A program made the position numbers and the translations under genes. This document shows positions 33,774-64,000 of a DNA stretch of 64,000 nucleotides, in pieces; the first letter of the stretch is position 1, and each line of letters opens with the position of its first letter. The notes beneath the pieces were generated by a model. The model made no database searches. It saw nothing but the letters and a program-made list of their open reading frames with translations, and was not told where the DNA came from. Origin of the DNA: Chrysemys picta bellii (Eukaryota); contig NC_088798.1 of assembly GCF_011386835.1 (NCBI RefSeq), positions 2,790,001 to 2,854,000 on the forward strand, in the 5' to 3' direction.

Positions 33774-36700
33774 ATGTCAAGCTGGGATGACCAGCACTGC
33801 AGCTGCAGGCAGATGCACAAAGAACGTCCGGCCCTCCCAGGAGCTTTCTGGGGTTTGCTTTCGAGCGTGGCATCCATGTCCCGGTAATGCTCTCACCTTC
33901 CTGCCTGGATGTGTCCTCCAGCTGCATTTCCTGCTGGAATCCTCCCGGACCGCCCTCGGGGTACTGACCTGCTAGTCAGGGCGTGTTAATGAAGATATTT
34001 TGAAACATGTTAGATTAAAGCCTGATGTTCAATTTCTTTGTTTAATTTACATATGCAGATTAAGTATATTTTTCTGCAGCCCCTCTGGGTCTTCTATATT
34101 TAACTGGCATTGAGAAAACTAAATGCATTATCTTGTTAACCATTTTTTATTTCCACAAGGTGGGGAAGAGGCTGAGCTATCCAGGTGCTGTGGCTTAAAA
34201 GACTCTCCTTTCCTCAAACCCTTCTGGAAGGAAACCGTGTATCACCTGAGCGTCTTGGCTGTGCTAATCCCCCTCACTTTCATACCCCGGTGGATATTGA
34301 TCCCGCCTTGGTGTTGAGTAATTTAGAGAATTTTTTCACTTCAAGGTCCCAGAAGCAAAGGCAAGGTTTTCATCCCGAGGCCAAAAGACCAAAAACATCA
34401 AGACACTTGATCACGGCCTTGGATAGACCAAGAGACTACTAACACTTTGACCACAGCTCAAAGAGCCGAGAAGTTTGCTGCTGCGTGTTTCGGACTTACC
34501 CTGAAGTACCCCCCTGGAAGAAAGCATTGGTGGGATATAAATAAATGCTCAAATCAAAACAAAGCAACAACATATGGGGTGGGAGCTCCTTGCCAAGCAG
34601 AGATTTCGGAGCGATATTCTTTGCAGCAAATGCTGCTTCCTCTAACGGGGATATCAATGTGTTCCTTGGATCTCTTTCTCATCTCCCAGTCCTGCCTTAC
34701 CTCTAGTGCTGGTATGTCTGATAAGGCCAGTTATAGCATCCTGCACCCCTTTCTTCCCCGTCCCCACTCAGATCTTTGCACCCGCTGAAGCTGTGGTAGC
34801 TAGGGGAGAATCTGGCCTGACGGTTAGGGGAGATCCAGGCCACGCTGGAGCAGGTCACCTTGGGAGCTAGTCGGTTCCCAGGAGAGGGCGTCAGGTTTGG
34901 GGTGTGTCCGGTGAACCTGCTTGGCCTTCCAGTGCTGAGGCTGAGTGAATGTTAATGAAACGTTCCCCGTAACTCTGCCATTCCTTCCTGGGGCCAGTAC
35001 GTCCCTCCACAGAGGGTTAACGCCAGCCTAGACCGCTCCTTTCCCTGGCGTCCTGGGAAGTCTCAGTTCCCAGAGCCTGGTGACCTTGGAGAAAGGAAGG
35101 AATTAACTCCCTGCCACCCACTGCTCTGTCCCCCGCACAGCCCTTGCTCCCTCCCGTCTCATTTCAGCCTCTGCCTCCTTGAGCCTTTGTGTGCCCGGAT
35201 TCTTTCACTGGCCGCAGCGACTCTTCCAAGGAGGAGCTGTGGCAGCTGGAGTGAAGGACTCTGGGGTTCAGGGGGATCCCCAATGCTGCCCGGGGGTGGG
35301 GCTAGCTGGGCAGAAACTCCACAGGCAGAGGGCAGGGCCCTGGTGAGGGGCTGAGGTAGGAGTGTCAGCACTCATACAGCCTATGCTCACGTCTTCCTTT
35401 GCCTGCAGCGGACGTATCCCTTGAACTCTGCCTTGGCCCTGCACTGGGTAGGGGATGATTTACAACCCCTCTGCTCCCTTCTCCTCTTTCCCACTGGAGC
35501 CCAGCTCAGAGGAGAGGGTGGTAAACAGCCCTGATTTACAGCAGGCCTGCTCCGGTGACAGCTTCCCTGTGCAAAGGGTGCAAATCACCCACTGCAGGGC
35601 GGGGCCAGGCCGGGCTGGGCGGCCCAGGAGAAGTCCGCAGCGGTGGGAGGGATACACGGACACTGCTGACGCTGTCCCCCGAGAGGCCGAACCCCCTGTG
35701 AAAGCGTCGGCCTGGCTCTGGACGCTGCCCTGCACAGAGCGACGTGGGCTGGCCCGAGTGGAAACGGGGTTCCTCCACACGTCCCTGGGAAAGGAGGCGG
35801 GATCCCAGCAGCGGCCGCGGCTGTTACAGTGTCAGGGGCCTCATAAAGATAAGCTGTGGAGTCGATCGCCAGGAAAAGTTGGCCTCGGGTTGAAGCGATT
35901 ATGGCTGCTCATAAAACCATCCTTCATCCTCAGCTGCTTTGCCTGTGGGCCTCAGGGAGGGGTCCCCTTTGCTGGCTTGCCCTGGCTCCAGCAGCATGCC
36001 AGCTGGCTGCAGGCAGGGTTGGTTCACGGCGGGAAGGAAGTGGCAGCAAGGAGGGGTGGGCATGAGGCTGGGGTTCAAAGGAGGAAAACCAGGAGCTCCT
36101 CATTACTCCAACAAGGATAAAAATGCCCCTCACCAGCCGCCTGCCTCCCCACACAGCCAGCGGCCCTGACACAGCTCTGCACTGGGGCCCCTGGAAGCAT
36201 GAGCCAGAGAGGTCAGACAAGGGTTTGGGGACTGGGTGGTTGTGGCTGGATCTGGCCCTTTTCTGAGGCCGACACCCATGTGGTCCAGCAGCAGGGCCGG
36301 CCAGCTGCAAAGCCTGCTTAGCTCGGCACTTCTCAGCTTCACGCTGCGCTCTGCACGCTGAATGAAGCCTCCCACCCAGCCCCAGGGCCATGTCAGCTTT
36401 ACCCCACACAGCAGCTGGGGGCACAGAGAGGAGCAGACCTGCCCACAGCCCCCCAGACAGGAAGTGGCAGAAGAGGAATTAGACTGTGGCGTTCCTGGCT
36501 CCCACTCCTGTGCTCCGGCCACTAGCCCACACCCCTGCCATGCTCAGGCCTAGGGAGCCCTGGAGCCACAGGATGTGGGGCTGACGTCAGCGACCCTTGC
36601 GGCAGCAGGGTGGGCGTGGTGACCGGCTGCCTCATAAACAATACACGCAGGGCCAAATCCTGAGCTCCTTAGCCCGAGCCAAGGGGAGAGGGGAGCTGGC

Positions 36701-36822
36701 CTGTTCTGCTTTGCGTCTTCCCAGCGTTTTACGTCCCTGCAGCAATAACTGACTCGCCTCCCAGATGTTAAAGGGACAGGAGCTCAGCTCTGCGGCCGCC
36801 CTCGTGCCCCGGGACACTGTTC

Positions 36823-36828
36823 TTTATT
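36823..36828 (-). terminator. Candidate polyadenylation signal of the LRR gene
   Basis: First AATAAA on the minus strand after the stop at 37971 (~1.1 kb 3' UTR). Confidence 0.5.
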
Positions 36829-37970
36829 AGCGCCATTGGGTTTGGGGGCCCAGGAGCTGTGGCCGGTTCCCTCTCTGCCCTGCAGGGAAATGCAGGGACT
36901 CTGCCCGTCTCTGGACAGCAAGAGCCGCGAAGACACCTCACCGTTGGGTCCTTCCTCTTCCCCCAGTGACCCTGCTCTGTCCCCAGCAGCGCAGCCTTGG
37001 ATTTCCAGGGCCTGATTCTCCTCCCACTCATGCCAGTTTTGCTGCCGGGTCACCCCAGTGGCTTTGATGGAGATATTCCCGACCTGCACCCCGAAGGCAG
37101 GAGCAGAACCAGTGCCCTGGCCTCTACCCAGACCCCAGGCCAGGGGTGGGAGCGTGGCAGAGGCCTGCTTGGGTCTAATTTTCAAGCCTGAGGGAGACGA
37201 AAACCTGTCCCAAGCCTTTTTCAGACCCACCCCGTGTCAGTGCCACCACCTCGTTCTTGGGGCTCGGCTGGGCAAGGGCTTCCCGCTCCCCATGCCCGTG
37301 ACCTGTCTCCAGCTGCCTCCTGCCCACGGGGTCGCACTGACAGCTCCGTGCCCCCTGCTTGGTGCATATGCGGTGGAGCAAGAGGTGCTGCGGCTCCTCG
37401 ACACGCTTCCTCCGCTGCGTGCCCAGGCCGGCAGGAGCGGGGCACACAGCCGCTGCGGTGCCAACCCCCTGGGCAGGAGGAGGGGAGCCGCGCCGTGCCT
37501 GAGAGGGTCGGATAGTTTTCCAGGGCATTCAGGGAGCAGCACAAAGCCCTGCTAAGGACGGCTGGCCCTGAGCGCCAGTCGTGGGCGGCCGCGGGAGCCT
37601 ATGATGGGCTGGTGAGACTCAGGCTCCGCATTTGGGACAGACGGCGTTATACGCTCCTGCCTGGTGGGAGTGTGTGGGAAGACCGGACCGTGACAGGCCA
37701 AGGGGGTGGGAATTCGGAAGGCAGCACGTCCCGCTCTGCAATGAGCCAGCCGAAGTCATTTCCAGACATTTATACCTCACGTACAATCGCTCTCGCTCCA
37801 GTCCAATGGATCGACATGACAACGGTCGTTTGAGTGACAAGCTCAATTCACTGCCCTCCAGCCGCATCCCGCGCTAGCTCCCACCCTCTCCCACCCCTGG
37901 GAGCGCGCTGGGTGTCAGCAAGGGCAGGGTACGGCCCCAGGTTCCCGGGACACCCCTCACGGGCCAAGCC

Positions 37971-40900
37971 TCAGTGCAGGTCAATGGTCTCGTACTCCTG
38001 CTGGTCGGAGTCCTCCAGCTCGATGGCAGGCACCAGGTTGTAATAATCCACCGCCTGGCCCATGTAGAGCTTCTCTCGGTCCACCGAGTCCTTCAGCACG
38101 TCCGTCACGCTCACTGTCTCCGCTTCCGGGTCGCTGCCCGCCAGCTCCTCTGCCGCCGGTGCCCCCGCGGGGCCCGTCTCCTGGCTGAGGCTCCCTTGGT
38201 TGACCAGCACAAAGGAATCCTCCAAGGCCCCCAGCTTGATTTCCACCTCTTCGTAGAGGTCCCTGTTGCTCCCCAGCAGGGCGGTGGAGGGCTTCAGCAG
38301 GACCTGGTTCCTCAGCAGTGTGTTTTTCTCGCTCTCGGCTGGGGCAGTGGGCGGCTCACACTGGATGTAGCGGTGAGGCTCTGCCAGCCCCTTGGCACCG
38401 TTCCTCTCCACTGTGGCCAGGTGGCACTCCGGCCTGCGGCTGAGGGCGTAGCCCGTCTTTCTCTTCTGCCTGCAAAAGCACCAGGCGACCAGGGCTAAAA
38501 CGACCACCAGGGGCAAGCAGATGAACAGGGCGGTCAAGCTGTGGGCCCGGCAGAGCTCCTGCTTACGGATGTCTCGGAGGTCCATGCTGCGGTAACGCTC
38601 TGGGGTGCTGCACACCACGACAGGGCCCTGCATGTCCCCGCTGGGTGGCTCTGGGGGATACTTCTCCAGGTCACCAAGCAAGGCGCAGGTGCAATCCCAG
38701 CTATTGTTGGCGAGGCCGAGCCTGGTGAGAGAGGGCTTAAAGACACTGGCGGGAAGGGAGGCCAAGTCATTGAAGCCAAGGTGAATCTCTTGGATTTGGG
38801 TGGAAGCTCTCAGGAAGGATTTGGGCAGCTTGCGAAGCTTGTTGCTGTCCAAACGAAGGACCCTCAATCGCGGGGCGTCTTCTAGGAAACTTTCTGGAAG
38901 CTTTTCCAACTGATTGTGATCCAAGTGCAAGATCTCCAGCCTGCCGGGCGCACCGGGCGCATTGACAATGTCCACCACGCCGCAGTGCGAGAGGTATAGC
39001 TCTCTCAGGCCTGTTACTCCACCGAAGAGGCTCCAGTCCAGGGAGCCAATTTCAGCCCCGGTGAAGTTCAAACAGCATGTCTGGCGGGCCGGAGCTGCCT
39101 GAAAATCCGAGAAGGCCACGGCGGTACTGCAGTTGCAGGCTTCCTCCACAGTTCCTAGAGCAAGTTGCGTGGTGAGCAACAGCCCAGCCCAGAGGATGAA
39201 TGCCCACAGCTCGCGACCTAAAGCAAAGAGGAGAGGAAAATAGATTAGTGATTTCTTCTGAGTAAAAAAAGGTTTGTAACTAACTCACAACATTTCTTGT
39301 ACAGCAAACACCAATCGCTGAGTAAGCTGCAGTTCGATCCGTTTAATGCCGGGGTGGCCAACCTGCGGCTCCGGAGCCACCTGCGGCTCTTCAGAAGTTA
39401 ATGTGCGGCTCCTTGTCTAGGCACCGACTCCGGGGCTGGAGCTACAGGTGCCAACTTTCCAATGTGCGGGAGGTGTGGGGGTTGCTCACTGCTCAATCCC
39501 TGACCCTGCCACAGGCCCTGGCCCCACTCCACCCCTTCCTGCCCCCTCCCCTGAGCCTGCCGTGCCCTCGCTCCACCCCCCCCCCCCAAGCCTCCTGCAC
39601 GCCACAGAACAGCTGATGGGGAGGTGCGAGGAGGAAGGGGGAGGCACTGATCGGCGGGGCTGCCGGTGGATGGGAGGTGCTGGGAGAAGCTGCTGGGGGG
39701 CTGCTGACATATTACTGTGGCTCTTTGGCAATGTACGTTGGTAATTTCTGGCTCCTTCTCAGGTTCAGGTTGGCCACCCCTGCGTTTAATGGGTCAATTT
39801 AACTATTGGGGAATAGTTTCTCTCTTCAAAAACTTTCCAAACTTTATCTGTACAAGGGTCACTTCACCCAGCCCTGAAAAGTAGCCGTTTCTGGGGTGGA
39901 ACCCCACAGCGTACAGTCATTCTGCAAAGCGACTTAAGCTAGGCGGTGAAAAAGAATCCTACCCTAACTGAAATACAGGGAAACAGCCTGCAGGTACCCA
40001 GATGAGAACTTAGCAAAGGCCGGCCCTGCTGCTCTTCTGAAACCTGCCATGGGATCTTTAACAACAATGAATGTTCAGAGCCGCCGTTGTATGTGTCGTG
40101 GGAAAGATGGCACCCCCCAGCAGCAGCACACCGCCCCCTATTGGCAATGCATGTTTAGCCACTATCGCTACTTATAGGTAATTCGAGGGATTGTGCCACC
40201 TTTAGCATCTCACATTAAAACATCCTGCAGCAGGGGAGAGGAAAGGGTTGGGGTGACCCCCCCCCGTCCTTCTTTTGAGCCCTAAATATCTGTGACCCAC
40301 TAGCATCTCCCAGTTGCATCTGGCATGAAAGGAGGGAAGAGGTGAGGGGAGGGACTTTCCTTTTTCAGCCACTAACTAAATTCACCCACCCGCTCTAACC
40401 CCTTCCCGAGAATGAACCCGCCTGCCCCCCGCACGCTGCGTCCATCTAGGACTTCCCTCTGACTGAGCACGAGACCAGGGCTGATTCTGGCAGGCAGCTG
40501 ATGTCAAGCTTCTAATACAGTGTCTGAAGCAACCCAGCCCTGGCGCAAACAAACACGGGCAGGAGCCCTGCCTCTGAGCTGGCCAGATCCTGCTGCTCTG
40601 CGAAGGGTTACCTGCACCAGGTAATCAGCTCGGCGCTCAAGAGCACCCTGATTACACCTGCTCCAGAGGAGAGCAGTTCCCCAGGCAACGGCTGGGCAAT
40701 TGTCAGCTCTCGTACTGAAAAGGGGCGTGTGTTGGGCAAACCACCAAGGCGGCGTGTGGGAATCACCCGCCCTAAGGCACAGAGATTGACTGGGTACCCA
40801 CGACCCTGCAATACTTGGCCAACGAGTGATCCAGATTCCTAGGACGAGGGGTGTCGGCGGCGTCTATGCTGCACCGACAGGACCATGGACTCAAAGGGCT

Positions 40901-43900
40901 CATCCACACACACAGTAAATTGCAGAAAGATGCCAGGCTGAGTTAGTTCCTGCTGGGAGAGAAACCTTTGGTTTCAAGGAGTCCAGGGATTTCAGACTTG
41001 ATGCCCTCCACTATCCTCACCAGAGCCCCAGCTATCTGCCTGTTCCTCTTATGCCGCATAACCTCCTTCCCACGCCTATGGCCTTTCTTTCAGGTGGTTG
41101 GAGGCATCTCTCTAGGATACTTCCATACAGCACAGCCACTTCTCTGAAGGACAGCCAGCCAGGTTACTTCCCCACGCAGCCTACAGGGGGGAAATCCTGC
41201 TCCCCTTCCTTTGGTGCAGAGGGCCTTCACTACAGTGGAATCGGTGTGATCCTGCTGCACAGAGCCCGGGGCACAATATGGGGAACTGCACAGAGGGGTC
41301 TGCACCCCAAGAGTGTCCTGGATTGGGGCTCCCTGCACCCCAGCACGCAGGAGCGAGGGCGTAGGGGCAGGGATCTGGAACAGGTGAGCTTTCCTCCGGA
41401 GGTGACGTCACACTGTCTGCGTGTGCAACAACAGGACCAGAGAAATTAACAAAGCTCGTCTAACAAAAGTCCACCCAGGACTCCAGTCTGACAGGTCGGA
41501 CCCCAGTGACCCGGAGAAGAGCTCTGGGTAAGCTCGAAAGCTTCTCTCTCTTACCAGGCAGCTGGTCCCTTGAAAGATATGACCTCATCCCTCTTGAATC
41601 TCCAATATCCTGGGACCGACAACACTGCAAACAGGTCCGACCCTACCTTCTCTTCCACCCCACGGCCTGTTAGGACCGTGTATAGCTATCCCAGAATGCC
41701 CTGCTACGGACAAACTGCCAACTCAGTGGGCAGACCTTTGTACTGATGGGCCACGGCAGTGCAGCGGGGTAGGGGGTGTTGAAATCTACATGCCAGGCTT
41801 TATGCAGGACGAATCAATTCAGTGGAAATTTACTGGCAGGACAAGCTATGCAGGCTTTGCTGCAGGGTAAGAAAAAGTCAACCCCACCGGTCTCTGCCGG
41901 AGAGGGGGTTCGATCCACCCAGGAAGCGGCTGTATGCAGGGCTTGGAGTTAGATGGGCGCTGCTTGGTTCCCCTTGTCTGGAGTAATCGGCGACACCTAG
42001 TGGGTCCTCTGGTGCATTGCGACGGCTGTGGGGCGAGGGAGGCCCGTGCCCTGGCCTCGTTCCCCATTTAAGGGTCAGACGTTTACTGAGGAAGCATTCA
42101 GGGGGCTTGGGTGACTCAGGATTCCGCCTCCAGCTCCAATCCTGCCCAGATACCAGCCTGGGTACCTCCTGGAGACTGGTCAGCAGCTTGGGCAGAACAG
42201 GTTGGTGGGTGTTAGTCCAGAGTCCAGGAGCCTGAACTCCCCCCTCGGGTCAGGGTCGAGGGTGTGTGTGGAAAGCTCGTCCTGTCGCTACCCATGTCCT
42301 GGGGAGAAGCAGGGACTTCAGTTCCCTGGGCTGTCAGGCTGGGCTCCGGGGGAGCACGTGCCGAGGGAGGCGTCCAAATGCTTTACAATGCCCGAGATGC
42401 AGGAAAGGTTCAGGAGCCGAACCGCTGGAGGGCGAGGAGGGAGCTCCTTGGGAATCAAAGCCCCAGGCACCGGGACCTGTGGTGCATCCGCTCATTCCCC
42501 AGAGCCATCAGCACAGCTGGGGCCAGGGTGTCAGTCCCAGGGCTGGAGACAAAGACCAGCCACAGCTGCGGTGCTGAAGGTAACCCGAGCCCCAAGTCAC
42601 AGTCGCTGTTTCCTCTCTCCCGGCTCTCTCTCAGCCAGGAATGGCCCTCAGCAGTGGGGTTACCAGAGACCCCACTACGCCACCCCCAAATCCATGACTC
42701 CCTGGGCTGGTGGGACGGTGATTCTACCTGGCGGTCCTGGTTCCGCACTTGCCTCTCCTCCCCCACCCTGCAGTCATCTCTCACCCCTTCTTTCTCTCCT
42801 TCTGCTCCCAGCGCTTCCCTTCTCCCCTTGCCCCTCCCTCAGTTCTCATGCCCTCCCCCTTGACTCTCTGCCATGAGTCCATGACGCCTCCTTATGGCAA
42901 GGCTCAGAGGGCCTGGCAGCCCCAAGGCACAACAGGTGGAGGGAATTTTGACGGCAGGTCCACGCAGAATGTCTCTGATACACAACCCGGCCTGTGTCTT
43001 CAGGCCCTCAGCAGAGGTGCTGCCCATACAAGCTAGCGTTCAAATGAGGACCTGGGGATTTCCCCCAGGCTGCCCCTCGTGCTTAGGAGGAGCTCCCTGG
43101 AAACAGCTGCAAAACAAACTCATTCTCCCCCTTTAAGTCCCTCCCAGCTCTCCATTGCCATGATGCCTACGGACGACAGCTAATTCGCTGGTGTGCGGGG
43201 AGCCCTGCCTGTCACACGGGCCAGTGTTTCCTTTGTTCACCTGTTCCCCACCTGATGGCTCTTGGCTTACATTGTAAGCTCTCTGGGGCAGGGGCCGCCC
43301 CTTTGCTCTGCGTCTGTACAGCGCCTAGCACCATGGGGTCCCAGTCCTAGGCGCTACGGTAACGTGCATAGGAATAATACTGTATGCTGGAGACATTACA
43401 GGGCCCCGGGCTCCGTTCCCTGCCATTGTGCGGGACAGGAAACGGCAGCACTTTGGCCCGTGTTCCGGTTACCGTCAGTTGGTCTGAGCAGGGCTGGAAC
43501 AATGAACAATCTCTGCTTATCAGCCACGCCATCCCCAGCGGAACTCCTGCTCAGCCCGACACTCCCTGGGCCCTTCCTGGCCACTGCCCGTGACGTCGGC
43601 TTTACCTCCCCGCCCTGCTCTCCTTAAAGGCCCAGGCCTGGTTTTTAACCAAGAGCCTTGTACGGCTTAAACCCTGAGCAGGCCTGTTCTGGAAGCCGGG
43701 GTGACGAGGGCTCGGTCGTTCGATGTGGGAAAACGGGGCTCTGGTCCCAGCTGTGGGAAGGACTCTTGTGAGGGGGTCTCACGAGGGACCGTGTGTTGCT
43801 CAGCTAGTTAAGAGGCAGTGTGCATGGGGTGTGTGCATTTGTGTGTGCGCCTGGGGGGGTGGATGGCTCAGGGGACCAGGATGGGATGCAGAGACCTTCA

Positions 43901-46900
43901 CCTCCAACTCCAGTCCAGTCTGAGGCTGGGGGACATGGCATTTAGGCCGGGGGTCCCGGGGGTCTTTCACCACTAGGTGGCTTGTTCCAATCCAGCACAG
44001 GCCAATTGGCAATAACACCCCCTACCCCTCGCTGGTAGCCCCAGCAAAAGGCCAAGGAGAGCAACTGACGCTGTCACGGCTGGAGGGAGCCCACTTGCCG
44101 ATGCCCTGGCTGTACCTGGCCATGGATACCCCGAGACCCCCGGGCTGCCAGCGGAGCACCTTTCACCGGCAGGAAATTCACACTGAAAGCAGCCGTGGGG
44201 ATGGGCTCCAAAAGGGGACCCTGAGCTGCCTTCCTGGTGTTTTCCCCGCCCTGTCCTGCCCCTAAGAGAACCAGGCCCCATGGCCCAGCGCTGCTCTCTT
44301 CCTCTCTGGGCTGGATCTCGCAGGCTGTGACACAAATCTGTCAAAACTGAGGCTCTCCCAGGAAATGTGGGGCCCAGGGCAGCCTGTTAGCAGCTTTTCA
44401 AGGCGAGGCGCTTTCCCGGGAGGGGAGGGGAGAGCCAGCGGCAGCGCTGGAAGCCCTCTCAGCCACAAGGCATGTCCCTTTCATTGCACTGGCTTTCTGT
44501 TTGCTATAGTGACACTGTTGTGCTTTGGCGAGGCCTGTCCCCTGGCAACGGCCCAGGGCCGAGCACTGGATGTGATCACCTGAACGGGGCACTGTGCCGG
44601 CAGGACTGGTCACCCAGCTCAGCCGACAGAGCTAAGCCTGGCCCCTGGGATGCCAACTGCGCACCGGCCCTGCCTCGAAACATTTGTTTTCTGTGACTGT
44701 CCCAAACACGCGCTCTGTGCAGCTGGCACCTGGCAATGGTAGAGGCTGGTGCTGTGGCTTTCCAAGCAGTTACCGGCAACAAACTTCAGCCTTAACTCGC
44801 ATCCCCCCATCCCCAGTTCACTCAAGGGAGACTGCGTTACACGGCGGGGGAGATGTTTCTCGGCTGAGGCCTCCAAACTCGTTTCACTGGTGATACAAAG
44901 CAGACCTCCTGAAGGAAGGCTTTAGAACGCACCGGATACCGCAGGGAAATGGACGGGAGAAAGGTGCTTGTTACTGAGGGTCTGGTCAGACCATCTGGGC
45001 AGCCCTCCCCCGATCTTCTGTGACGCCGAGCGGCAGCTCAGCCTGGTTAGCAGCTTTCACCGAGGCCCCGCACCTAGTTTTAGTTCCTCTCTGAGCCCTG
45101 CTCATGAGAAGCCTGGAACTGCTATCCCCTCTCCTAGAGCCCAGGGACACCCCTGCCAATTCAACTCTCCCCCCATGCGTGGCACAGAGTGGCACACACA
45201 CCCAGCAGGGTCCTGGATGGCAGCAGCTACAAGCAGCTCGCTGACACAGCAGGAGAGAGTCCAGCAGCAACGGGGTATCCAGCCCGAGTGCAGCTGGACC
45301 CCAGCTCATGGTGATCAGCACAACTCCTGCTCTGTTCACAGTCCCTTCTGTCTCTGTAGGCCCCGTGTGGGGCTGTGTGCCACCGCTCCCCAGCACAGCC
45401 AGCCAGAGCAGGGGGAGTGGAGCCGGCTCCTGGTACCTTCCCTCCTGCCTCTGAAGCACCAACTGGAACTCCCACTCGCTCTGTGCAACTGCAGAACCGG
45501 CCCGTTCCCCTTGGCTGGTTACAGCATGCTGCGCTGCTGCTCCTCTCTCGGATCCCGGGGGGCCTGGGCGCTGAGCTGAGGAAAGCACTTCTTGCACTTA
45601 CTTTTCACTGCATCCCCTTCCCCCCCAGGCGCGCACCCATTGTTACAGAGGCTCTAGAGAAAACGTGGATCCTGGGTTCACACCAGTGTAGCTGAGAGCA
45701 GCGTTTGCCCGACTCGTGCATGGGTACACATGGAAAATCATTAAGGCGGTCACCCGGTTAGCGTCCGATTTCACAGACTCTGGGCAAGATTTTCAACAGT
45801 GACTAGGCCAGGGGTTCAGAGCCGGCCTTAGGGAAAACGGTGCCCCTGGCTCTTGGGCTCCCCTGCCCGTCACCCCCGGCCCCTGCTGGCTCCCTCATCG
45901 CCCCCAGGCTCTGCTGCCACCCCCACACATTGCCTCGAACTTCTTTCTGTGGCCTCGGAGCCCAGGCCTGCCCTATTTCTTGCCTCTTGACCACAGTGCC
46001 GTAAGGCCAGCCCAAACCTGTCGCCAGCATGACCCTGTTGCAATTCATTATTTCCTCCCGAGACCCCAGACACCATGGAGGACGCCATTTTGTAGAGCAG
46101 AATGGTCTCCTCCGTGCGCTGTGGTCTCACATGGATGGTGCGTGCGAGGTCACAAAATGGCGTCCTCCATACATGAGGGGCCGCCGCCACCCCATCTGCT
46201 GGTGGCACACTCTGGGAACTGCTGGACTCGTGATTTGGGCACCTAACTTGCAATTTCTTTGGAAGGGGCCAGTTTTTCACAGGGGCTGCTCAGCGCTTCC
46301 TGAGAAATAGGCCCCCTGAGGGGTTTCAGCTTGGGTCCCCAAAATCACTAGCCCCTTTGGAAAATCTGGGCCTCTGACAGCTCCATTCTTGCAGCCCGAA
46401 AGTCCCACATCCCTTTTCAGCCAGGATGCACTTTGCACGTCGCCAGCACCTTCCACCCAAGGGTCTCGAGGCACCTGACAAACATTCGCGAATTTAGCTT
46501 CAAATCCGCCTGTGACGTAGGAAATGAACAGACTTCCCACGTTCCTGGAGACTTGCTCCAAGTTACAAAATGAGTCAGCGGCAGAAGTGGGAGTGGGGCT
46601 TCATTTGTAATGAAAGAGGTGCCGGGGGCTCAAGCAATTTTTTGTTTTTACATTCATAACTGATGCAGCAAGTCCAGGGGCTCTGAACCGCCAGGCCCAG
46701 AGGTGCCGGGCTATGAACCCCCAGGCCCAGAGGTGCTGGGCCCTGGCACAAATTAAACCCCGCTGACGATCAGGAACGATTTTTTCCCATCTCCTCCCTA
46801 GCAGCAAACTACCCCCCGCTGGCCTGGGGCACTGAAGTCGGTATTGACGCCGGAGGAAGAGCGCCCCCTATTGAGACACCAGCCCAAACGCTGGGGCACC

Positions 46901-47261
46901 CGAGTGCCCAAGGGGGCCGTGCTGGGAAGGCAGGTGGTGCTCGGCTTGGGCAGGGGGCGCGGAGCGGACTCCCGGCCAGGGTGGCACGGGGGAGAGGGGG
47001 CTCCGCGCCGGGCTGCTGGAGGGACCCGGTGGCCCCTGCGAATGGAGCCCGGGGAACGCAGGCCCCTGCCCCGGGAGACCCAGCCAAGCCCCAGCGCACC
47101 CGCTCCCCGGCAGCCTGGCCCGAGCCAGTCCGCGCCCGCGGAGCCCCAGGCGGCGCGCAGTTCCCAGGCAGCCGGGGGAGATGGGGCTGGAGGGAGGCGG
47201 ACCCCGGTCCCGGGACAGAGCCCCCGGGCGGCCCTCACTCACCTCCCGCGGCGGGTCCCAT
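37971..47261 (-). CDS. Uncharacterised type-I transmembrane leucine-rich-repeat protein, 421 aa; coding exons 47243-47261 and 37971-39217
   Basis: The 1247-nt exon is open throughout and has a strong polypyrimidine-TAG acceptor at 39218. A phase-1 donor (ATGGGACCCGCCGCGGGAG|GTGAGT) in a CpG island supplies the start. Product: signal peptide MGPAAGGRELWAFILWAGLLLTTQLALG, Cys N-cap, ~5 LxxLxLxxNxL repeats, LRRCT (NSWDCTC...C.TP), TM ALFICLPLVVVLALVAWCFC, basic stop-transfer RQKRK and an acidic tail. The exon 1 join is inferred. Confidence 0.88.
39349..39782. mobile_element. hAT-like non-autonomous DNA transposon in LRR-gene intron
   Basis: TIRs CCGGGGTGGCCAACCTG / CAGGTTGGCCACCCCTG; flanked by direct repeat CGTTTAATG. 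Confidence 0.88.
41511..41630 (+). mobile_element. Second Penelope-like family terminal fragment
   Basis: GAAGAGCTCTGGGTAAGCTCGAAAGCTT...AAAGATATGACCTCA...TCCTGGGACC; related copy at ~52898-53030. Confidence 0.6.
43262..43382 (+). mobile_element. L2-like LINE 3' end
   Basis: TTGTAAGCTCTCTGGGGCAGGG...TGTACAGCGCCTAGCAC...TAGGCGCTAC...AATAATA tail; similar tail at ~7640-7727. Confidence 0.55.
46266..46372. mobile_element. Short GGGCC-ended palindromic element
   Basis: Ends GGGCCAGTTTTTCACAGG / CCTTTGGAAAATCTGGGCC; same end design as 26166-26265. Confidence 0.5.
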
Positions 47262-47450
47262 CCTCCCGCGGGGGCTCTCCGGGGAGCCGAGCGGCGGGGC
47301 CCCGTCTCAGGTGTCCATGCCGGGCTGCGCTCCGCGCTCGCTCGGGCCGGCCCTCCCGGGGTGTGGCTCCGCCTCGGCTCGGGCCGCCTGCGGAACAGAG
47401 GCAAGTAACTCCCCGCCCTCCGGGATTTCCCCGTCCCGTGCCCCAGAGCT
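46800..47450 (-). promoter_or_regulatory. CpG island / promoter and exon 1 of the LRR gene
   Basis: Dense CpG, GC-rich region containing the in-phase ATG and splice donor. Confidence 0.7.
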
Positions 47451-49003
47451 AGCCCCCTTCTCCTTCCCAGCCGCCCCTCTCCAGCCCCTTCTCCGCACTC
47501 CCCTTCTCCTCCCTAACCCTTCTCCCATCTAGCCTCCCCATATCCCCCCCTCAGTCCCCAGCACCCCCGGGATGCAGTCTTCCTCTGGTTCCCCAGCCCC
47601 TCAATATCCAGCCCCCTCCCTAATCCACAGCCCCACCACCCTCCTTTTTCAACCCCCCCATATCTTGCACCCTTTTTTCTTCCCAGCCCCCAGCATTCTC
47701 CTCTTCCAGCCCCCCCCCCCCGAATGCCTCAACTTCAGCCTCCAGCCCCCCAACTCTCCAGCCTCTCTCCCGCCAGCCCCCAGGGCCCTGCTAGGCACCT
47801 GGCTGAAGTCCCCCACCCCCTGTGGATGGTGGGAAGCAGCTGTGTGTGTTTCTGTGGGTCTGTTTCCCCTTCAGTGGAAACCCGCCTGGAGACACCAGCC
47901 CAGGCAACGCGCACAACTCCGTGACTGAGAGTGTGTGTAAAAACAGGAGCCCTGGAGAGAATCTGCCCCGGGGAGGCTAACTAACCCCCGGGGCCCCGCT
48001 GCCGTCTCTGTGTACACTGGTGTTCCTGTGCAAAGGGCCGTAACTAGGAACGATTAGGGTGGAATTGAGCAGGGGAACACTTACGCTGGGGCTTTGGGGT
48101 GTGGCAATAGCGGCCCTGTGGGAGGGCCTGGCTGGGACCCCATCACTTGGGATGGACCAACTGGATGGAGCACTTGTAATTGGGCTGTAGGGCCAGGAGG
48201 AGCTCCGAGGGGGGTTATCCATCTCTAGTTCCCTCCATTCCTGGTTCTGGGAAATGCAGGGGGGCAGGATCGGACTGGCTGCTGACCCAAGGGGTGTCCT
48301 TCTGTCTGTGGCCGTGATCCTGCAAACACCCACTTGCTTAACTTGGTGCACACGAGTATTTCTGTTGAGTTCAGTGGCACTAAGGCCTGAGTGGTATTTA
48401 GGTGCTGAGTGAAGAGAGTTAGGCCTTGTGAGGATCTGGGCCTAACTCCTGTGGGTAAAGTTAAAAGTGAATGTAAACGCTTGCCGGATCGGGGCCAAAT
48501 AGATCAAAGATTCTTCCTCCCGTTGTGTCTCTTGTGAATGTTCTTTTTCCCAGTACAAGCGAAAGCCCAGGGGCACTTGAAACCAGAGAGATAAAAGAGC
48601 CCCAGGCTGAGGAAACAAAGCAGAACAATAAGGAAAATTATTAATCCGTAATACTGAGGCTTGGCAACTAACATCTTTGAAACATCGGCCATGCTAACGA
48701 ATAAATCCTTGCTCCAGCAAGTCATAGAATGTTGATTCCCACCATGACTCTGGGTGGAGGCAGATAAAAATGACCATACAGCTAGGTAAACTGAGGCTCG
48801 GGGTGCCCCAGCGCCCTCAACCTTAAACCATCCTTTAAACCTGTGCAAAGTTTGTGCATCAAACCAGTAGCGTTTGACACCCACTTTGCACATACGTAAG
48901 TGACTGTGCAAGACTGGAGGGAATCAGATCTCGGTTGACTAGCCGGGGAGTGAGTGTGTGATGGAGCCCGTATAATACTGGTGTGGGTCTGACTGTACTC
49001 ACA

Positions 49004-49256
49004 GGCCTTGTCTGTACTTGAAAACACTGCCGCTGTCGCTGCACCTTCAAAATCCGGCTAGTGTAGCCACAGTTATACCAGCACAAAGGAGCTTTTGTTG
49101 GCACCGCTCATCCCAGTTTGAAATCAGACGAAAGCAGGTTTTTGCCAGTATAACTGCGTCTACACGAGGGCTTTTGCCGGCCCAGCTACATCATAAAAAC
49201 GATGGGACCCCAACCAGCACCGCATGCCGGCAAAACTTTTAAGTGTAGACCTGCCC
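49004..49256. mobile_element. PIF/Harbinger-like MITE
   Basis: Ends GGCCTTGTCTGTACT / AGTGTAGACCTGCCC, with internal GTCTACAC/GTGTAG repeats. Confidence 0.6.
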
Positions 49257-49468
49257 TAGCGTGAGATCTGTATCTGAGCATGCTCAGTGCAAGCTAAATG
49301 TTTCCAGAAGCCTGAGGAGACTTGGGGTGAGCTGAATGCTTCTACAGCTACTAATAAATGTATTCGGCCTTTTCTCCAACCCCTCTGCCTCCTGAGCTCC
49401 TAGTAAGCCTGCCAGAGATCACAGAACATGCCTGGAATAAACGGTGCCGTAAGATGTGCTGAGAGGTT

Positions 49469-49593
49469 GTTTCAGAGTAGCAACCATGTTAGTCTGTATC
49501 CGCAAAAAGAACAGGAGGACTTGTGGCACCTTAGAGACTAACACATTTATTAGAGCATAAGCTTTCGTGGGCTACAGCCCACTTCTTCGGATG
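49469..49593 (-). mobile_element. Penelope-like terminal fragment with hammerhead-like motif
   Basis: Same family as 33.5 kb; minus strand CATCCGAAGAAGTGGGCTGTAGCCCACGAAAGCTTATGCTC. Confidence 0.78.
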
Positions 49594-50544
49594 GCTCATC
49601 ATTTAAGACAAAGGTAGGTAGGGGCCAATATTTTAAAGGATTTATTTCTTTGCTTTTCTCACCTGACGTATGTGAGGTACCCCTGCAAGTTGTAATAGTA
49701 TTTAGCGCTTACGCTGGTTTGTTCGTCTTTTGAGCTTTTTACGATTAAAGGAATGTAACCCACTTAAAAAGGTGCAGTACCTGGAGATTTTGTTCCGTGT
49801 GTGCAGTGGGGCCATGGTCCATGGCTTCCCCCTCACTGCTGTTACAAGTGACAGCTAAGATCGCTATAACTGAAAGAGGTTGGGGGGGGAGGCAGAATCT
49901 CTCAGTTTTCCAGTGTGTTAGCTTTGTACATTGCCCTCGTGTTGGGTCTATTCAGTTTCACGGTTTCCTTTGCAGAGGCAGGTGGTTTGTCAGTTTCCCG
50001 TCTTGTCTGCATGGTTCTTTCTCACAGCAGTGAGGGTGAGAAAAACACTTTTGAAAAACAGGAAAATGTGGTTGTCAAGCCGCAGAAATTGGCAGGGAGA
50101 CCCCGGTCTCAAAACGGCGTTTAACTCATGTTTGAAAAGGGACTAGGTTTCATTACTGTAAGGAGTCCACTGGAGTCCCCCCCGCCTGCCTTTCCAGTGT
50201 TACTTCTCTTCCCGTTGCCTGAATGACCCTGTGCCTGTCCCCACGAGACTCTGCCGACACACCCGGAGCGATCCCCTCGTGAGCTCAGGTGGGTCAGCAG
50301 CGAGAGCTGAGTGCAGCAGATGAGCAACGGGCCTCGTGAAAAGGCAGCCGGGCTCTGTCTGCAGCAGGCAGCAAACAAAACAAACTCCATAGCAACAAAA
50401 GGCCGAGCGTGCCTGACTGGGGATTTCAGAGCGGGTGAAACAGAAACAGACACAGTTCCTTGTTGGGTGTGATGCAGGGAACGAGTGTTTGAAGGTTACA
50501 GGAAGAGGGTGCAGAGAGGAAGGGTGGTGCATGAGGTAGGGCGC

Positions 50545-50720
50545 TAGTGTGGGAAACCTGGTTTCAAGTCTCTGCTCTGCTACAGTCTCCCTGTGTGACC
50601 CAGGGCATGTCCCTTAGTCTCTGTTCTCCATCTGTACAACGAGGTCATAGCCCTGCCCTCCCTCCCAGGGGTCTTGCGAGGGTAAGAACACTACATTGTG
50701 AGGGGCTCAGATATTATGGA
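50545..50720 (+). mobile_element. MIR/CORE-SINE
   Basis: CTGTGTGACCCAGGGCATGTC...CTCCATCTGTACAA. Confidence 0.6.
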
Positions 50721-50857
50721 GAAGGGGACCAGACAAGGACTGCAGATGGACGGCTTTTGCTATGCAATACTCAGTGCTGGAAGCAGAGAGGCCTTCCCCA
50801 CAGCCCTGCAAACGTGGTCTAGTGGTCAGAGCCTGGCTGGGACTCCAGACCCTGGGT

Positions 50858-51490
50858 ATTTCTAGAGTTTAAGGCTAGAAGGGACCATTCAGATCATCCC
50901 GCCTGACCTCCTTGACAACACAGAGCTTAGAGCCTCGCCCAGCGATCCCGGCAGCGCGCGCACGCGACATGCGGTTGAGCTATCGCGGATCTTTTAGAAC
51001 AATATCTGGGTTTGATTTAAAGAATTAAAATGACAGAGACTCCTCCCCACCCTGAGGTCAGCTGTTCTGATGGCTAATTCCCATCACTGTTAGAAATCAG
51101 GCCTTATTTCTAGTCTGAATTTGTCTAGCTTCAGCTTCCAGCCACCGGATCTCGTTCTGCCTTTTCCTGCTAGGTTAAAGAGCCCTCGGCTGTCTCAGAA
51201 ATCTCCTCCCCTCTGAGGTACTTGTAGACCATGAGTAAGTCCCCTCTTAATTTTTTGGGGATTAGATTGAGTTTCTTCAGACCCTCATTGGAAGGCAGGT
51301 TTTCCAGACCTCAGATTGTCCTTGTAGCTGTTTCCTGAACCCTTTCCAATTGGTTCCCATCCTTTCTGAAGTGCGGATACCAGAGCTGGATGCAACAGCC
51401 AGTAATGGCCTCGCTGATGCTGTATCCGGAGGTGATGCCCACCCCTCTACTCTACCTGATTGGCCATTCCCAGCTCTGTCGCTGGGTGAC
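50858..51490 (-). mobile_element. Old CR1 LINE 3' fragment
   Basis: TCTAGTCTGAATTTGTCTAGCTTCAGCTTCCAGCCA...GGTACTTGTAGACC...CTTCAGACCCTCATTGGAAGGCAGGTTTTCCAG; antisense of the CR1 ORF2 3' region. Confidence 0.75.
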
Positions 51491-52897
51491 CCAGGAGAAC
51501 TCACACCCCGGCTGCAAAAGGGGGATAGTGACCCTGCCCCAACTTTGCAAGGGACGCTGAGCTCCGGGAGTGAAAAGCGCTGCATGAGTCCGGGTACTAC
51601 CCTCATTCTGTAGGCTGTCCTCCCAGCCAGAGGGGTTCCTGGTCGGCTCTCTCCATGACAGCTGGGCACTGAGACAGGGGCACTCCCTCCTGAAAACCTC
51701 AGCCCTGGTCTGTAATGCCCTGTGTCCTTCCCATGGAAATCGGGTGCCTGGAGGGGGGCTCAGAGTGGCTGAAACCACATCCTGTTGAAGGCCCCGACCG
51801 CCATTCTGCATGCACCGGGTGCGGGCAGCGTAGTGCTCCAGGCAGCTGTGGGTGGATCCCAGCCATGCCAAGGAGATGCACGCCCCCTTACCTGCCCCCT
51901 TGCGCTCATGGACACTTTCCCTTTCCTGTTTTCTTGGTCTCCCCTGACTCTAAAATAAAAGCTGGTCCCTGCCTCCTTTCAACCTGCGCCTTGGGATATT
52001 TAACTGCCCCCTGCATGGGCCCTGCTAAAGGCTGACAGGGTGGAGCTGGGCCCAATGGCTCATCTCTCTTACTCCTCCTTTCTTCCTCCCCCTTGTTACT
52101 ATCGCTGGCTTCGCTCAGGTCCCATGGTCTGGTGATGCTTGTGGCTCAGGCGAGGCCCCCCCTTCCCCCTGCGTTATGTCCCAGTTCTCCTGCCACAAAC
52201 TGATTGTAACACGGTTCTGCCCTCACGCCCTGGGGGCTGATGAACTGCAAGGGCCCTGCATGGGTTGGGATGGACCGTGTCCAGCAGAGGGAGCTAATGG
52301 TCACTGACCCTGGGGCCGATGCACGGATGTGTGGAAACTGGTGAAGCAAGAGCAAAGGTGGGTTATGAAATGGGGGCCGGTCCGACCAGGCCAGAGTCCA
52401 GGTCCAGCATACAACTCTGTAAACGCCCCTCCCAGGCCTAGGTGCTGGAACTCGGGGGGCTGCCGCACCCCTGGCTGGAAGTGGTCTCCATCATATACAG
52501 GGTTTACAGCTTAGTTCAATGGCTCTCAGCACCCCCACGATACAAATCGTTCCAGCCCCCCTGCTCCCCAGGGCACCTTCCAGCCGGTTGTTGCTACGTC
52601 TGAATATAGACATGGCCTGCTGGTGTACCGTGCAGCCCCTCGACCTCACGCGGGGGTCTTGTCCGCTCTCACAAGCTAAGCCGGCCTGGGCAGGGGCAGC
52701 CCTTGGATGGGAGATGACCAGGAGAATATTCAGGCTGCTGACGGGAAGGGGGTGGGTGACGCCACACGAGGCGCTGGCCCCTCTGAATCAATACAGACCT
52801 CACTGCCCCAGTGTGATGCCAGGGGGCAGAAAACCAAACCCAGCCTTACCCTCCCAGCTGCGGGGGCACCTCCCCAACAAGACAGGAGCTGGACTCG

Positions 52898-53030
52898 CGG
52901 GAGAAGAGCTCCGTGGAGCTCGAAGGCTGGTCTCTCTCCCCACCAGACGTTGGGCCCATTAAAGATATGACCTGACCCACCCGGGTTCTTTCGTTTCCTG
53001 GGACCAACACGGCCCCAGCAGCTCTGCAAA
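52898..53030 (+). mobile_element. Degenerate Penelope-like terminal fragment (family of 41511)
   Basis: GAAGAGCTCCGTGGAGCTCGAAGGC...AAAGATATGACCTGA...TCCTGGGACC. Confidence 0.5.
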
Positions 53031-53056
53031 CATACACTCAGCAGGTCAGAGTCCAT

Positions 53057-53099
53057 TCTCTCTCTCTGTGTGTGTGTGTGTGTGTGTGTGTACACACAC
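53057..53099. repeat. (TC)n(TG)n-TA-(CA)n compound microsatellite
   Basis: Direct reading. Confidence 0.9.
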
Positions 53100-53654
53100 G
53101 TCACATCTATGTCCCTCCACCAGAGGGCAGCAGTACCCACAAATATCAAGCAGGAGCAGAGTCCGCCCCGCATGCGGCCTATGTGCTGTCTCATGCATAC
53201 AATCGCCTACATGGTGTTATCCAGATGATACACTGCAAACCCCTATAGCAATGGAGATCGCAGTCAGGTGCTTTTGACCATCTCCTCTGCATCGCTCTGC
53301 CCACCCGTCCATTTCCCCTGGGACTTACTCTAACACCCCAAGCCTCTAAGCAGCCTTAGAGAACCAAGTGCCCTCACCCCAAGTCAGCCCACCAAAGAAA
53401 TTATTCCTAATGTGGAATTTGATAGTTACCCGACACTCAGGCCATGGGTCAAATCCAAATCCTTACTGCGAATCGGGGGGACAGACCTTGCTCCGAAGAC
53501 ATGGCGTGACCTCTGACCTTGGTGGGATTTACGTGTGACCCTTCAAACACTCAGACGTCACCTCCCGGTTCTGTGTTCCGGGTTCACTTAAAACATCATC
53601 AGATCTTTACACCTTCTGCCCTTGAGCTGTATGGGGAGGTGAGTCCTAGTGACG

Positions 53655-53835
53655 GGAGCCCAGGCCTGGCACTGGTCCCGCTTTGTCTTTGGGCAAATCA
53701 CTTCATCTCTTCATGCCTTATTGTCCCCTTCTGTCAAATGGAGACACTGATACTTACCTCCGAGGCGGCTGTGGGGTTGAATTAGGTAACACTTGTTCGG
53801 GGCTGGGAAGATGGAAAGTGCTTTGCAGGTGCTAG
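53655..53835 (+). mobile_element. MIR/CORE-SINE
   Basis: TTTGGGCAAATCACTTCATCTCT...TCTGTCAAATGG. Confidence 0.55.
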
Positions 53836-54424: not shown

Positions 54425-54443
54425 CCACGCCCCCTGCTGGTGG
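54425..54443 (-). promoter_or_regulatory. CTCF motif
   Basis: Minus strand CCACCAGCAGGGGGCGTGG. Confidence 0.6.
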
Positions 54444-55288: not shown

Positions 55289-55446
55289 CAGGGCCGGCTC
55301 CAGGCACCAGCGGAGGAAGCACGTGCCTGGGGCGGCACATGCTAAGGGGCGGCACTCCGTCCATTCTTGGGGGGCACACTCCGGGCGGCTATTTTTTTTT
55401 TTTTTTTTTTTTGCTTGGGGCGGCAAAAATGGTAGAGCCGGCCCTG
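55289..55446. mobile_element. hAT non-autonomous MITE, intact
   Basis: TIRs CAGGGCCGGCTC / GAGCCGGCCCTG; perfect 8-bp TSD TGTTCTGG. Confidence 0.93.

Positions 55447-58883: not shown

Positions 58884-64000
<5,117 letters not shown>

Follow-up and report, generated by a model that had tools for sequence, protein, structure and literature searches.

The window analysed here, 64,000 nt of the Chrysemys picta bellii genome (GCF_011386835.1, NC_088798.1, positions 2,790,001-2,854,000; all coordinates below are window positions), contains a real, transcribed and spliced gene for a leucine-rich repeat (LRR) membrane protein, which by sequence comparison is the ortholog of an uncharacterised vertebrate gene called si:ch211-106k21.5 in fish. 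It is a single-copy receptor gene whose cytoplasmic tail is kept almost residue by residue between sharks and birds, and it has no stable name. With confidence a little better than even, we regard the product as a functional orphan type I receptor that most likely serves as a phosphotyrosine docking site for SH2 proteins in the manner of LRRC25. That no mammalian protein matches it probably explains why the gene has gone unstudied; no relevant paper was found in the literature on si:ch211-106k21.5, the LOC identifiers or a BEST4/PLK3-linked LRR gene.

The gene, with all its transcribed features given below, lies on the minus strand and consists of two coding exons encoding a type I membrane protein of 421 amino acids (six whole codons, a split Gly codon and 414 codons). 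The coding part of exon 1 (47243-47261) is an ATG plus 16 nt, giving MGPAAG and the first base of the Gly codon; read from 47261 to 47243 it is ATGGGACCCGCCGCGGGAG, followed by GTGAGT, with the GT donor at 47242-47241. The 5'UTR (47262-47383) was checked letter by letter at 47262-47274, and a 139-letter contig overhang suggests its extent to ~47383. A CpG island (47000-47399; GC 0.80, CpG observed/expected 0.66-0.85) covers the promoter and exon 1, GC being 0.776 in a 500-nt interval at this island. Intron 1 (39218-47242; 8,025 nt, GT...AG, phase 1) ends in the acceptor ctttgctttag, after which exon 2 begins at 39217 with GTCGCGAG. The coding part of exon 2 (37971-39217) is uninterrupted up to the TGA stop at 37973-37971. 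The original prediction of a 421-aa product built from a 19-nt coding exon with its own CpG island, an ~8-kb intron and one large exon is confirmed by the sequence and by transcript contigs. The AATAAA placed by it downstream of the gene is not there: a hexamer scan of the sense strand found neither AATAAA nor ATTAAA in the 970 nt after the stop, only TATAAA at 37774-37769, within a 3'UTR of ~209 nt (37762-37970) that is delimited by the ends of the longest RNA contigs (37762 and 37765). A very short first coding exon in phase 1 recurs in Caretta, Carettochelys and Buteo (19 nt each), Polyodon (13 nt) and Xenopus (7 nt); intron 1 of the ortholog measures ~265 nt in the hawk (Buteo) and ~8-9 kb in Caretta and Carettochelys. 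The alternative N-terminus of Malaclemys isoform X1, MRSYLLRDQLP, is absent from every minus-strand frame of the window.

RNA contigs from four runs in four studies give intron-less coverage starting at 37762, 37765, 37843 or 37954 and reaching 39219, and their loose ends beyond 39219 (101-139 letters) match exon 1 and its 5'UTR in reverse complement. Since the contigs run from exon 2 straight into exon 1 letters, the junction 47243->39217 is in use; exactly this junction, proposed earlier as a check on the gene model, is carried by contigs of all four studies. The contigs stop at ~37762, with no read-through toward BEST4. One further contig, at 36684-37030, was tested for read-through into BEST4; both its loose ends are missing from the window, and it is therefore probably a repeat copy from another locus.

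The architecture read from the sequence, namely a signal peptide, about five Cys-capped LRRs, an LRRCT and a single transmembrane segment, is borne out by Pfam matches, invariant cysteines and an AlphaFold helix. The signal peptide core GRELWAFILWAGLLLTTQLALG (39153-39218) continues from exon 1 and lies in a modelled helix of residues 2-20. Next come the N-terminal Cys cap, C28-x-C30 ... C48-C49, and the glycosylation sequon CCLN-F-T (39072-39137), whose columns are invariant across 28-29 aligned orthologs; CCLN[FLY][ST] is present in 163 of 165 full-length orthologs. Five LRRs (38697-39053) are supported by Pfam (LRR_8 at E 5.8e-15; LRR_4 and LRR_1 are the only other families matched) and by predicted beta strands at residues 73-75, 96-98, 120-122, 144-146 and 166-168 (AlphaFold, pLDDT >90). 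The C-terminal cap, LRRCT (38547-38696), has the invariant cysteines C176, C178, C203 and C223 and can be aligned with its counterpart in LRRTM, chondroadherin and TLR3 chains. The transmembrane helix (38472-38540) ends in the juxtamembrane cysteines WCFC, C249 being invariant in the ortholog alignment; the hydropathy maximum falls at residues 227-249 and the AlphaFold helix spans 227-254. With LRR Pfam families alone, Cys caps, one transmembrane segment and a tail outside Pfam, the protein belongs to the LRR_Only class, defined by a signal peptide, Cys-capped LRRs, one transmembrane segment and no other domain (Dolan et al. 2007, PMC2235866).

Searches with the exon 2 product (415 aa, without the six exon-1 residues) retrieved orthologs in more than 200 clusters, spanning cartilaginous fish to birds; no mammal is among the matches listed. 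The turtle protein shares 98% identity with a Malaclemys terrapin model, and the proteins named si:ch211-106k21.5 in Latimeria, Erpetoichthys, Pristis, Chiloscyllium and Cheilinus match it at 35-98% identity across 94-100% of the query; similarity to this orthogroup is full-length and includes the tail motifs and the CCLNF[TS]G signature. Orthologs behave as single-copy in sharks, rays, ray-finned fish, coelacanth, lungfish, amphibians, squamates, turtles, crocodilians and birds. Their gene tree agrees with the phylogeny of the species. The dN/dS ratio, suggested earlier as a test among turtles, is 0.36-0.40 both there and against a bird, and the frames are intact in related species, with none of the frameshifts that had been named as a possible refutation; by these measures the family is under purifying selection and deeply conserved. 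As had been anticipated, annotation is confined to LOC entries and generic LRR models, with conflicting automatic names: SLITRK1/3/5/6, TLR3, GP5, alcohol dehydrogenase, "bestrophin-4 isoform X4" and si:ch211-106k21.5, and in fish often LRRC26, LRRC38 or LRRC55. One orthogroup name should replace the SLITRK, TLR3, GP5, alcohol dehydrogenase and bestrophin-4 isoform labels.

An exhaustive search of 1.84 billion representative proteins with a family-specific tail profile gave 20 matches (E <= 0.001), of which 19 are orthologs. The remaining one, a 925-aa fish protein with Ig repeats, is spurious, as the match lies inside its repeats. No ortholog from a mammal, lamprey or invertebrate was found among these representatives, and all orthologs with an assigned species are non-mammalian. 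The taxonomic span of the orthologs and the tail profile support the earlier proposal, for which a one-to-one mammalian ortholog would have been fatal and among the protein collections none appeared, that the gene was kept in non-mammals and lost in mammals, where it was presumably deleted or decayed; the basis here is protein collections only. It would add one clean case of a vertebrate signalling gene lost in mammals.

The cytoplasmic tail (37974-38471) comprises 166 aa, in line with the ~170 aa expected, with a net charge of -13, and is mostly disordered in the model. Its conserved tyrosine motifs are YEEV (38255-38244), YMGQ (38066-38055), YYNL (38045-38034) and YETI (37994-37983); across the family, the four nearly invariant motifs read RDLYEEVE, REKxY[ML]xQ, [VT]xYY[NS]LVP and EYE[NS][VI]. 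Counted over 165 full-length orthologs, an RD[LIV]YEEVE-type motif is kept in 151, REKxY and YY[NS]LVP in 161 each, and EYE[NST][VI] in 153. In the alignment of 28 species Y322, Y385, Y392 and Y393 never vary and Y409 hardly does; every conserved tail tyrosine has acidic surroundings. Conservation reaches well past the tyrosines, as in LLKPSxALLGSxRDLYEEVEIKLG and ETVSVTEVLKDSADREKLY, and a helix is predicted at residues 371-393; this could mean a domain that folds on binding, with a different partner. Pfam searches with 26 ortholog tails gave only scattered chance matches (E >= 0.02), leaving the tail without a Pfam family, and the tail by itself brought no usable match from the Atlas. An ITAM is defined as YxxI/L, a 7-8-residue spacer and YxxI/L, and an ITIM as S/I/V/L-x-Y-x-x-I/V/L (both as quoted in PMC6107485). 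Between Y392-Y-N-L and Y409-E-T-I there are 13 residues, a spacing shared by all aligned orthologs and outside that of an ITAM; a canonical ITAM receptor was rejected on this ground. The sequence V-D-Y-Y-N-L matches the ITIM pattern in turtles and squamates; the residue at -2 of the YY motif is T in birds and teleosts (TNYYNL, TEYYSL) and A in sharks.

In the reading we favour, the small glycosylated, Cys-capped head of five LRRs would bind an extracellular ligand, the juxtamembrane cysteines after the transmembrane segment would probably be palmitoylated, and tyrosine kinases would phosphorylate the tail sites, which would then form a docking platform for SH2-domain proteins. By SH2 preferences, YEEV would suit a Src-family SH2 domain and, in tetrapods and sharks, YxN one of the Grb2 type. 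Since the Asn of YxN is replaced by Ser in most teleosts (YYSLVP, YESV) and by Thr in emydid turtles (YETI), Grb2-type binding cannot be what is conserved across the whole family. The protein would act, like LRRC25, as an LRR-headed immunoreceptor or transmembrane adaptor, and the defined set of tyrosine motifs is open to testing in chicken, Xenopus or zebrafish. LRRC25 (MAPA) is an LRR protein of mammalian leukocytes; in humans it probably lies on 19p together with BEST2 and PLK5, in a region paralogous to 1p34. PMC6107485 describes it as a type I protein with four LRRs and a tail that bears YENM and an ITIM within an ITAM; the turtle tail offers YE[NT][VI], the ITIM-pattern VxYYxL and YEEV. 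Both proteins are small and type I, with few LRRs, a C-terminal Cys cap, one transmembrane segment and several tail tyrosine motifs, and LRRC25 is the nearest named family outside the gene's own clusters by protein-language-model features (Atlas, score 0.95, 177 shared features). The two differ in length (305 versus 421 aa). Homology of the tails was not detected, the tail profile matching no LRRC25 among the 1.84 billion representatives; none of more than 230 retrieved relatives bears the LRRC25 name, and an ectodomain-only query and an ectodomain profile retrieved, besides orthologs, just a few unrelated LRR proteins and no named paralog. The palmitoylated transmembrane adaptors LAT and PAG/Cbp likewise combine juxtamembrane cysteines after the transmembrane segment with an acidic, disordered tail that bears several tyrosine docking motifs, YxN among them, features that the turtle protein shares; however, they have almost no ectodomain, whereas the turtle protein bears a complete LRR head, and the tail profile found no homology to them.

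The tail motifs can also be read as trafficking signals. YEEV, YYNL and YE[NT][VI] all fit the Yxx-hydrophobic pattern, YxxV/YxxL matching endocytic sorting signals, and a conserved acidic run, ELEDSD, with its invariant Ser-containing DSD cluster, lies between two of these motifs; adaptor-protein and acidic-cluster signals of this kind would suit an endocytic or sorting receptor, with the LRR head capturing a ligand for uptake or shuttling between compartments. We consider this possible but unlikely, as four tyrosine motifs with conserved upstream acidic residues and conserved +1/+2 positions are more than sorting normally requires, and E-E at +1/+2, as in YEEV, is typical of SH2 specificity.

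Bestrophin exons lie in the window downstream of the LRR gene on the same strand, in agreement with its predicted place directly upstream of BEST4. PLK3-like kinase exons, found by kinase motifs, lie upstream on the opposite strand (61700-62695); the proposed divergent orientation to PLK3 thus stands, but the two are not close neighbours, as the kinase exons begin ~14 kb from exon 1. A Pfam search with ten plus-strand ORFs at 47572-59267 gave no domain match. The LRR-to-Bestrophin tandem on one strand was found in the smelt Osmerus (2.8 kb gap), the paddlefish Polyodon (7.5 kb), the hawk Buteo (2.4 kb) and three turtles (the window, Caretta and Carettochelys). Because it is shared with a teleost and paddlefish, the LRR gene is ancestral at this locus, and the polarity implied by describing it as "inserted" between BEST4 and PLK3 was wrong. 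No bestrophin was found within 10 kb of the ortholog in Xenopus or the wrasse Cheilinus, and the record of the white-shark locus shows no neighbour within 10 kb. In Rhineura, Anolis and Scyliorhinus, annotation assigns the LRR protein to best4 gene models; one Anser model fuses the two.

This tight and ancient linkage provides a concrete hypothesis on the site of action. The protein might be a partner or regulator of the BEST4 anion channel, a single-pass LRR auxiliary subunit co-expressed from the tandem, as LRRC26, LRRC38, LRRC52 and LRRC55 are subunits of BK channels. The conserved gene order and the joint gene models agree with it, as do the frequent LRRC26/LRRC38/LRRC55 names of fish orthologs and the presence of LRRC26 (Slo1 complex) among the top Foldseek matches (target TM-score 0.55-0.61). 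We nevertheless think it improbable: linkage does not equal interaction, mammals retain BEST4 and the tail was found in no mammalian protein, Xenopus and the wrasse have no bestrophin within 10 kb, and the turtle contigs end without read-through. The BK gamma subunits, together with LRTM1 and LRTM2, resemble the turtle protein in having a signal peptide, a capped single LRR domain and one transmembrane segment; however, they have six LRRs and a short acidic tail (PMC2235866), unlike its five LRRs and 166-aa, tyrosine-rich tail with four conserved motifs. Membership in the LRRC26 family was rejected on these two features, the likeness to LRRC26 being structural only. A broader version seems to us just as doubtful: receptor and channel would be an old functional pair, in tandem for ~450 million years, with the LRR protein either an auxiliary or regulatory subunit of BEST4 or a signalling receptor found specifically on BEST4-expressing cells, and mammals would have done without it. 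If the pairing were true, it would define a new class of single-pass LRR regulators that act on bestrophins much as LRRC26 acts on BK channels.

The ectodomain, modelled with pLDDT >90, has the same capped fold as the Nogo receptor, LRRC26, GPIb-alpha, Slit D2, lamprey VLR, LRRTM2 and chondroadherin, and Foldseek matches to such capped extracellular LRR domains have E-values of 1e-7 to 1e-5 at ~25-30% identity. None of the Nogo receptor, GPIb-alpha, Slit D2, VLR, LRRTM2 and chondroadherin has the CxC...CCLNFTG signature or the tail. Fold searches against PDB and the Atlas returned generic capped-LRR matches; the Foldseek comparison suggested at the outset did place LRRC26 near the top, but as a fold-level likeness alone that leaves the families unseparated. 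A cell-adhesion or synaptic-organiser protein in LRRTM or SLITRK style, suggested by the top PDB sequence match (an engineered LRRTM, E 4.5e-30) and by the many NCBI names reading SLITRK1, 3, 5 or 6, is a reading to which we give little credence: the LRRTM and SLITRK matches reflect repeat-level LRR similarity only, the tail profile matched neither family, and the last residues vary among orthologs (DLH, DLS, NLS), with no conserved C-terminal PDZ-type motif seen. SLITRK proteins have two capped LRR domains and 700-1000 aa; SLITRK identity was rejected for a protein of 421 aa with a single LRR domain, the SLITRK names on orthologs being automatic labels. An annotation artefact or decaying pseudogene can be dismissed with near certainty, given the spliced transcripts, the intact frame, a dN/dS below 0.4, a conserved intron phase and motifs invariant over roughly 450 million years.

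By sequence reading, exon 1 of the LRR gene lies on the minus strand at 47261-47243 (...gggaggATGGGACCCGCCGCGGGAG, followed by the intronic GTGAGT), and exon 2 starts at 39217 on the same strand, with ...ctctttgctttag on the intron side of the acceptor and GTCGCGAGCTG... on the exon side. The 19-nt exon 1 leaves one base (phase 1), which together with GT forms a Gly codon; 414 further codons are open up to a TGA at 37973-37971. The originally predicted intact product of 421 aa, made from a very short first coding exon and one large exon, was thus recovered, and the predicted CpG island over exon 1 was found at 47000-47399 (GC 0.80, CpG observed/expected 0.66-0.85). The window contains no N.

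Exon 2 was present in 18 public runs from six studies. Contigs from four of these runs, one per study from four studies, were mapped onto 35500-40500, and each run yielded one exon-2 contig, extending from 37762, 37765, 37843 or 37954 to 39219. All four contigs end their genomic match at the acceptor without entering the intron and overhang it by 101-139 letters, the first 30 matching exon 1 and the pre-ATG bases exactly in reverse complement. As the intron is absent and the overhang matches exon 1, these contigs represent spliced RNA, and the proposed junction 47243->39217 is in use. The 5'UTR comprises at least 13 nt read directly, or about 120 nt to judge from the length of the contigs, and the 3'UTR about 209 nt. 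The downstream AATAAA of the original prediction was not confirmed: a hexamer scan of the sense strand within 970 nt 3' of the stop found neither AATAAA nor ATTAAA, TATAAA at 37774-37769 being the only such hexamer.

A very short first coding exon, followed by a phase-1 intron, was also found in other species (19 nt in turtles and hawk, 13 nt in paddlefish, 7 nt in Xenopus), and this arrangement is old; the wrasse ortholog has one coding exon only. The closest public model, Malaclemys isoform X1 (P0001), begins with MRSYLLRDQLP rather than MGPAAG, which implies an alternative first exon; this peptide is not encoded anywhere on the minus strand of the window.

Homology searches used the exon-2 part of the spliced protein, and residues are numbered by the exon-2 translation. 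The only Pfam domains in the protein are LRR_8, LRR_4 and LRR_1, and PDB sequence matches are to generic LRR proteins. An AlphaFold model based on a 28-ortholog alignment has a confident ectodomain (pLDDT above 90 over about 30-185) with five LRR strands, followed by a TM helix (227-254) and a tail in which only a low-confidence helix (371-393) interrupts the disorder. Fold searches matched the Nogo receptor, LRRC26, GPIb-alpha, Slit, VLRs and LRRTM2, and the ectodomain is therefore a standard capped extracellular LRR domain. Its invariant residues in the ortholog alignment include C28, C30, C48, C49 and the sequon of CCLN-F-T, as well as the LRRCT cysteines C176, C178, C203 and C223. The TM helix terminates in WCFC, with C249 invariant, and the tail (166 aa, net charge -13) alternates near-unchanging blocks with variable linkers. 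Nei-Gojobori dN/dS of exon 2 was 0.40 against Caretta, 0.36 against Carettochelys and 0.40 against Buteo, with similar values for the ectodomain and the tail. Exon 2 is under clear but moderate purifying selection.

Word-indexed searching yielded 121 relatives, about 390-480 aa long, in turtles (98% identity in Malaclemys terrapin), squamates, birds, alligator, caecilians, salamanders and frogs, and also in coelacanth, lungfish, bichir, paddlefish, gar, bowfin, teleosts, sharks and rays. Their source names are discordant: uncharacterized LOC, si:ch211-106k21.5, SLITRK1/3/5/6, chondroadherin-like, TLR3, platelet glycoprotein V, alcohol dehydrogenase and bestrophin-4 isoform X4, much as the original prediction of a LOC or generic LRR annotation had supposed. 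Because the claim of mammalian loss depends on absence, a profile of the tail alone (A2) was built and searched exhaustively against 1.84 billion representative proteins (E <= 0.001). Of the 20 proteins recovered, 19 were orthologs, ranging from 69 to 482 aa; among those newly found, the ten that were looked up belong to teleosts and a gharial, one 69-aa fragment lying outside the look-up. The twentieth, an Ig-repeat fish protein aligned within its own repeats, was regarded as a chance match. No mammal, cyclostome or invertebrate was among these tail-profile matches. Loss from mammals, as originally proposed, is shown at the level of protein collections only; the gene is retained from sharks to birds. 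A maximum-likelihood tree (28 sequences) contained clades of turtles with archosaurs, of squamates, of frogs, of chondrichthyans and of ray-finned fish, a pattern that fits single-copy orthology; Alligator was on a long branch (0.85). The crocodilian models, P0083 from Alligator (391 aa, odd composition, middle of the tail missing) and P0131 from Gavialis (285 aa), are unusually diverged yet keep DLYEEVE, YYSLVP and EYESVEL.

In a goose fusion model, the bestrophin part aligns to 29215-29063 (minus strand) and corresponds to where the called bestrophin genes begin in hawk and paddlefish; Bestrophin exons are also present at 25497-25862 and 23999-24385. PLK-type kinase exons at 61700-62695 on the plus strand fit PLK3 best (80 bits, against 60 for PLK2 and 42 for PLK1). 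About 14 kb separate exon 1 from these first recognisable kinase exons, compared with 4.8 kb in hawk, and ten plus-strand ORFs within 47572-59267 had no Pfam match. In the hawk Buteo buteo, a PLK gene (Pkinase and POLO_box, opposite strand) is followed after 4.8 kb by the LRR gene and after a further 2.4 kb by Bestrophin. The LRR-then-Bestrophin order is shared by Caretta, Carettochelys, paddlefish (7.5 kb apart, with a zinc-finger gene upstream) and the smelt Osmerus (2.8 kb), while in Xenopus and a wrasse neither neighbour was found within 10 kb. This tandem is therefore older than the split of ray-finned fish and tetrapods, and, contrary to the insertion originally suggested, the gene was not inserted in reptiles. 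In Rhineura (P0012), Anolis (P0026), Scyliorhinus (P0091) and Anser (P0062), public annotations label the LRR protein as a bestrophin-4 isoform or fuse it to the first bestrophin exon, a hint that some species may have read-through or shared transcripts; turtle contigs from the four mapped runs contained no read-through toward bestrophin.

Among extracellular LRR proteins, the turtle protein qualifies for the 'LRR_Only' type I class as that class is defined (PMC2235866). In kind, the described protein nearest to it is LRRC25, which is of type I, 305 aa long, and combines four LRRs with a tail bearing YENM and an ITIM within an ITAM (PMC6107485). Outside the gene's own clusters, LRRC25 was also the first named family that the Atlas feature search gave; membership is unsupported, as the tail profile recovered no LRRC25 from the 1.84 billion representatives. 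The locus itself is already known, being predicted in many genomes, and is not a new system; a literature search, supplementary tables aside, found no paper on it. The novelty lies in recognising a single orthogroup, coherent and deeply conserved, that has a distinctive tail, preserved linkage to BEST4 and no mammalian protein match.

Among 165 full-length orthologs, the tail motif RD[LIV]YEEVE is kept in 151, REKxY (mostly Y[ML]xQ) and YY[NS]LVP in 161 each, and EYE[NST][VI] in 153, every conserved tyrosine having acidic surroundings. YEEV is close to the Src-family SH2 optimum, and YxN is a Grb2-type SH2 site. Palmitoylated transmembrane adaptors share this protein's layout of juxtamembrane cysteines and, after them, a disordered and acidic tail rich in tyrosines. 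Given these motifs and this layout, we put at slightly better than even the chance that the protein is an LRR-headed receptor whose tail tyrosines would become phosphorylated and would then recruit SH2 proteins. In turtles and squamates, VxYYxL of the tail fits the ITIM pattern as quoted in PMC6107485; position -2 is T in birds and teleosts and A in sharks. Several features call for caution about SH2 docking: the conserved stretches reach well past the tyrosines; the YxN asparagine is replaced by Ser in most teleosts and by Thr in emydid turtles; and the two C-terminal motifs are 13 residues apart, beyond ITAM spacing, so that a canonical ITAM receptor is rejected. The tail motifs also match Yxx-hydrophobic sorting signals, and a rival reading is an endocytic or sorting receptor. 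The protein might also be a partner of BEST4, by analogy with LRRC26 on BK channels; a BK gamma subunit proper is ruled out by the five LRRs and the long tail. An adhesion-type LRR protein is a further alternative, SLITRK being ruled out by the single LRR domain in a short protein. The C-terminal motif reads YETI in emydid turtles, including the window (37983-37994), and hence lacks the Asn that a Grb2-type site requires; YEN[VI] is the form in most tetrapods and sharks, and YES[VI] is frequent in teleosts.

Some contigs near the gene probably have other sources. One run (X8) contained a contig matching only the 347-nt stretch 36684-37030, with no match for either flanking end anywhere in the window; probably it derives from a repeat copy that is transcribed at another place, or belongs to a transcript with other exons beyond the window. 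Within intron 1, just upstream of exon 2 (39341-39841), many contigs of 43-126 nt (95-99% identity) were found in all four runs, with a very high summed depth of up to about 2,470; their appearance is that of a dispersed repeat family, abundant in transcript data and outside the LRR-gene mRNA.
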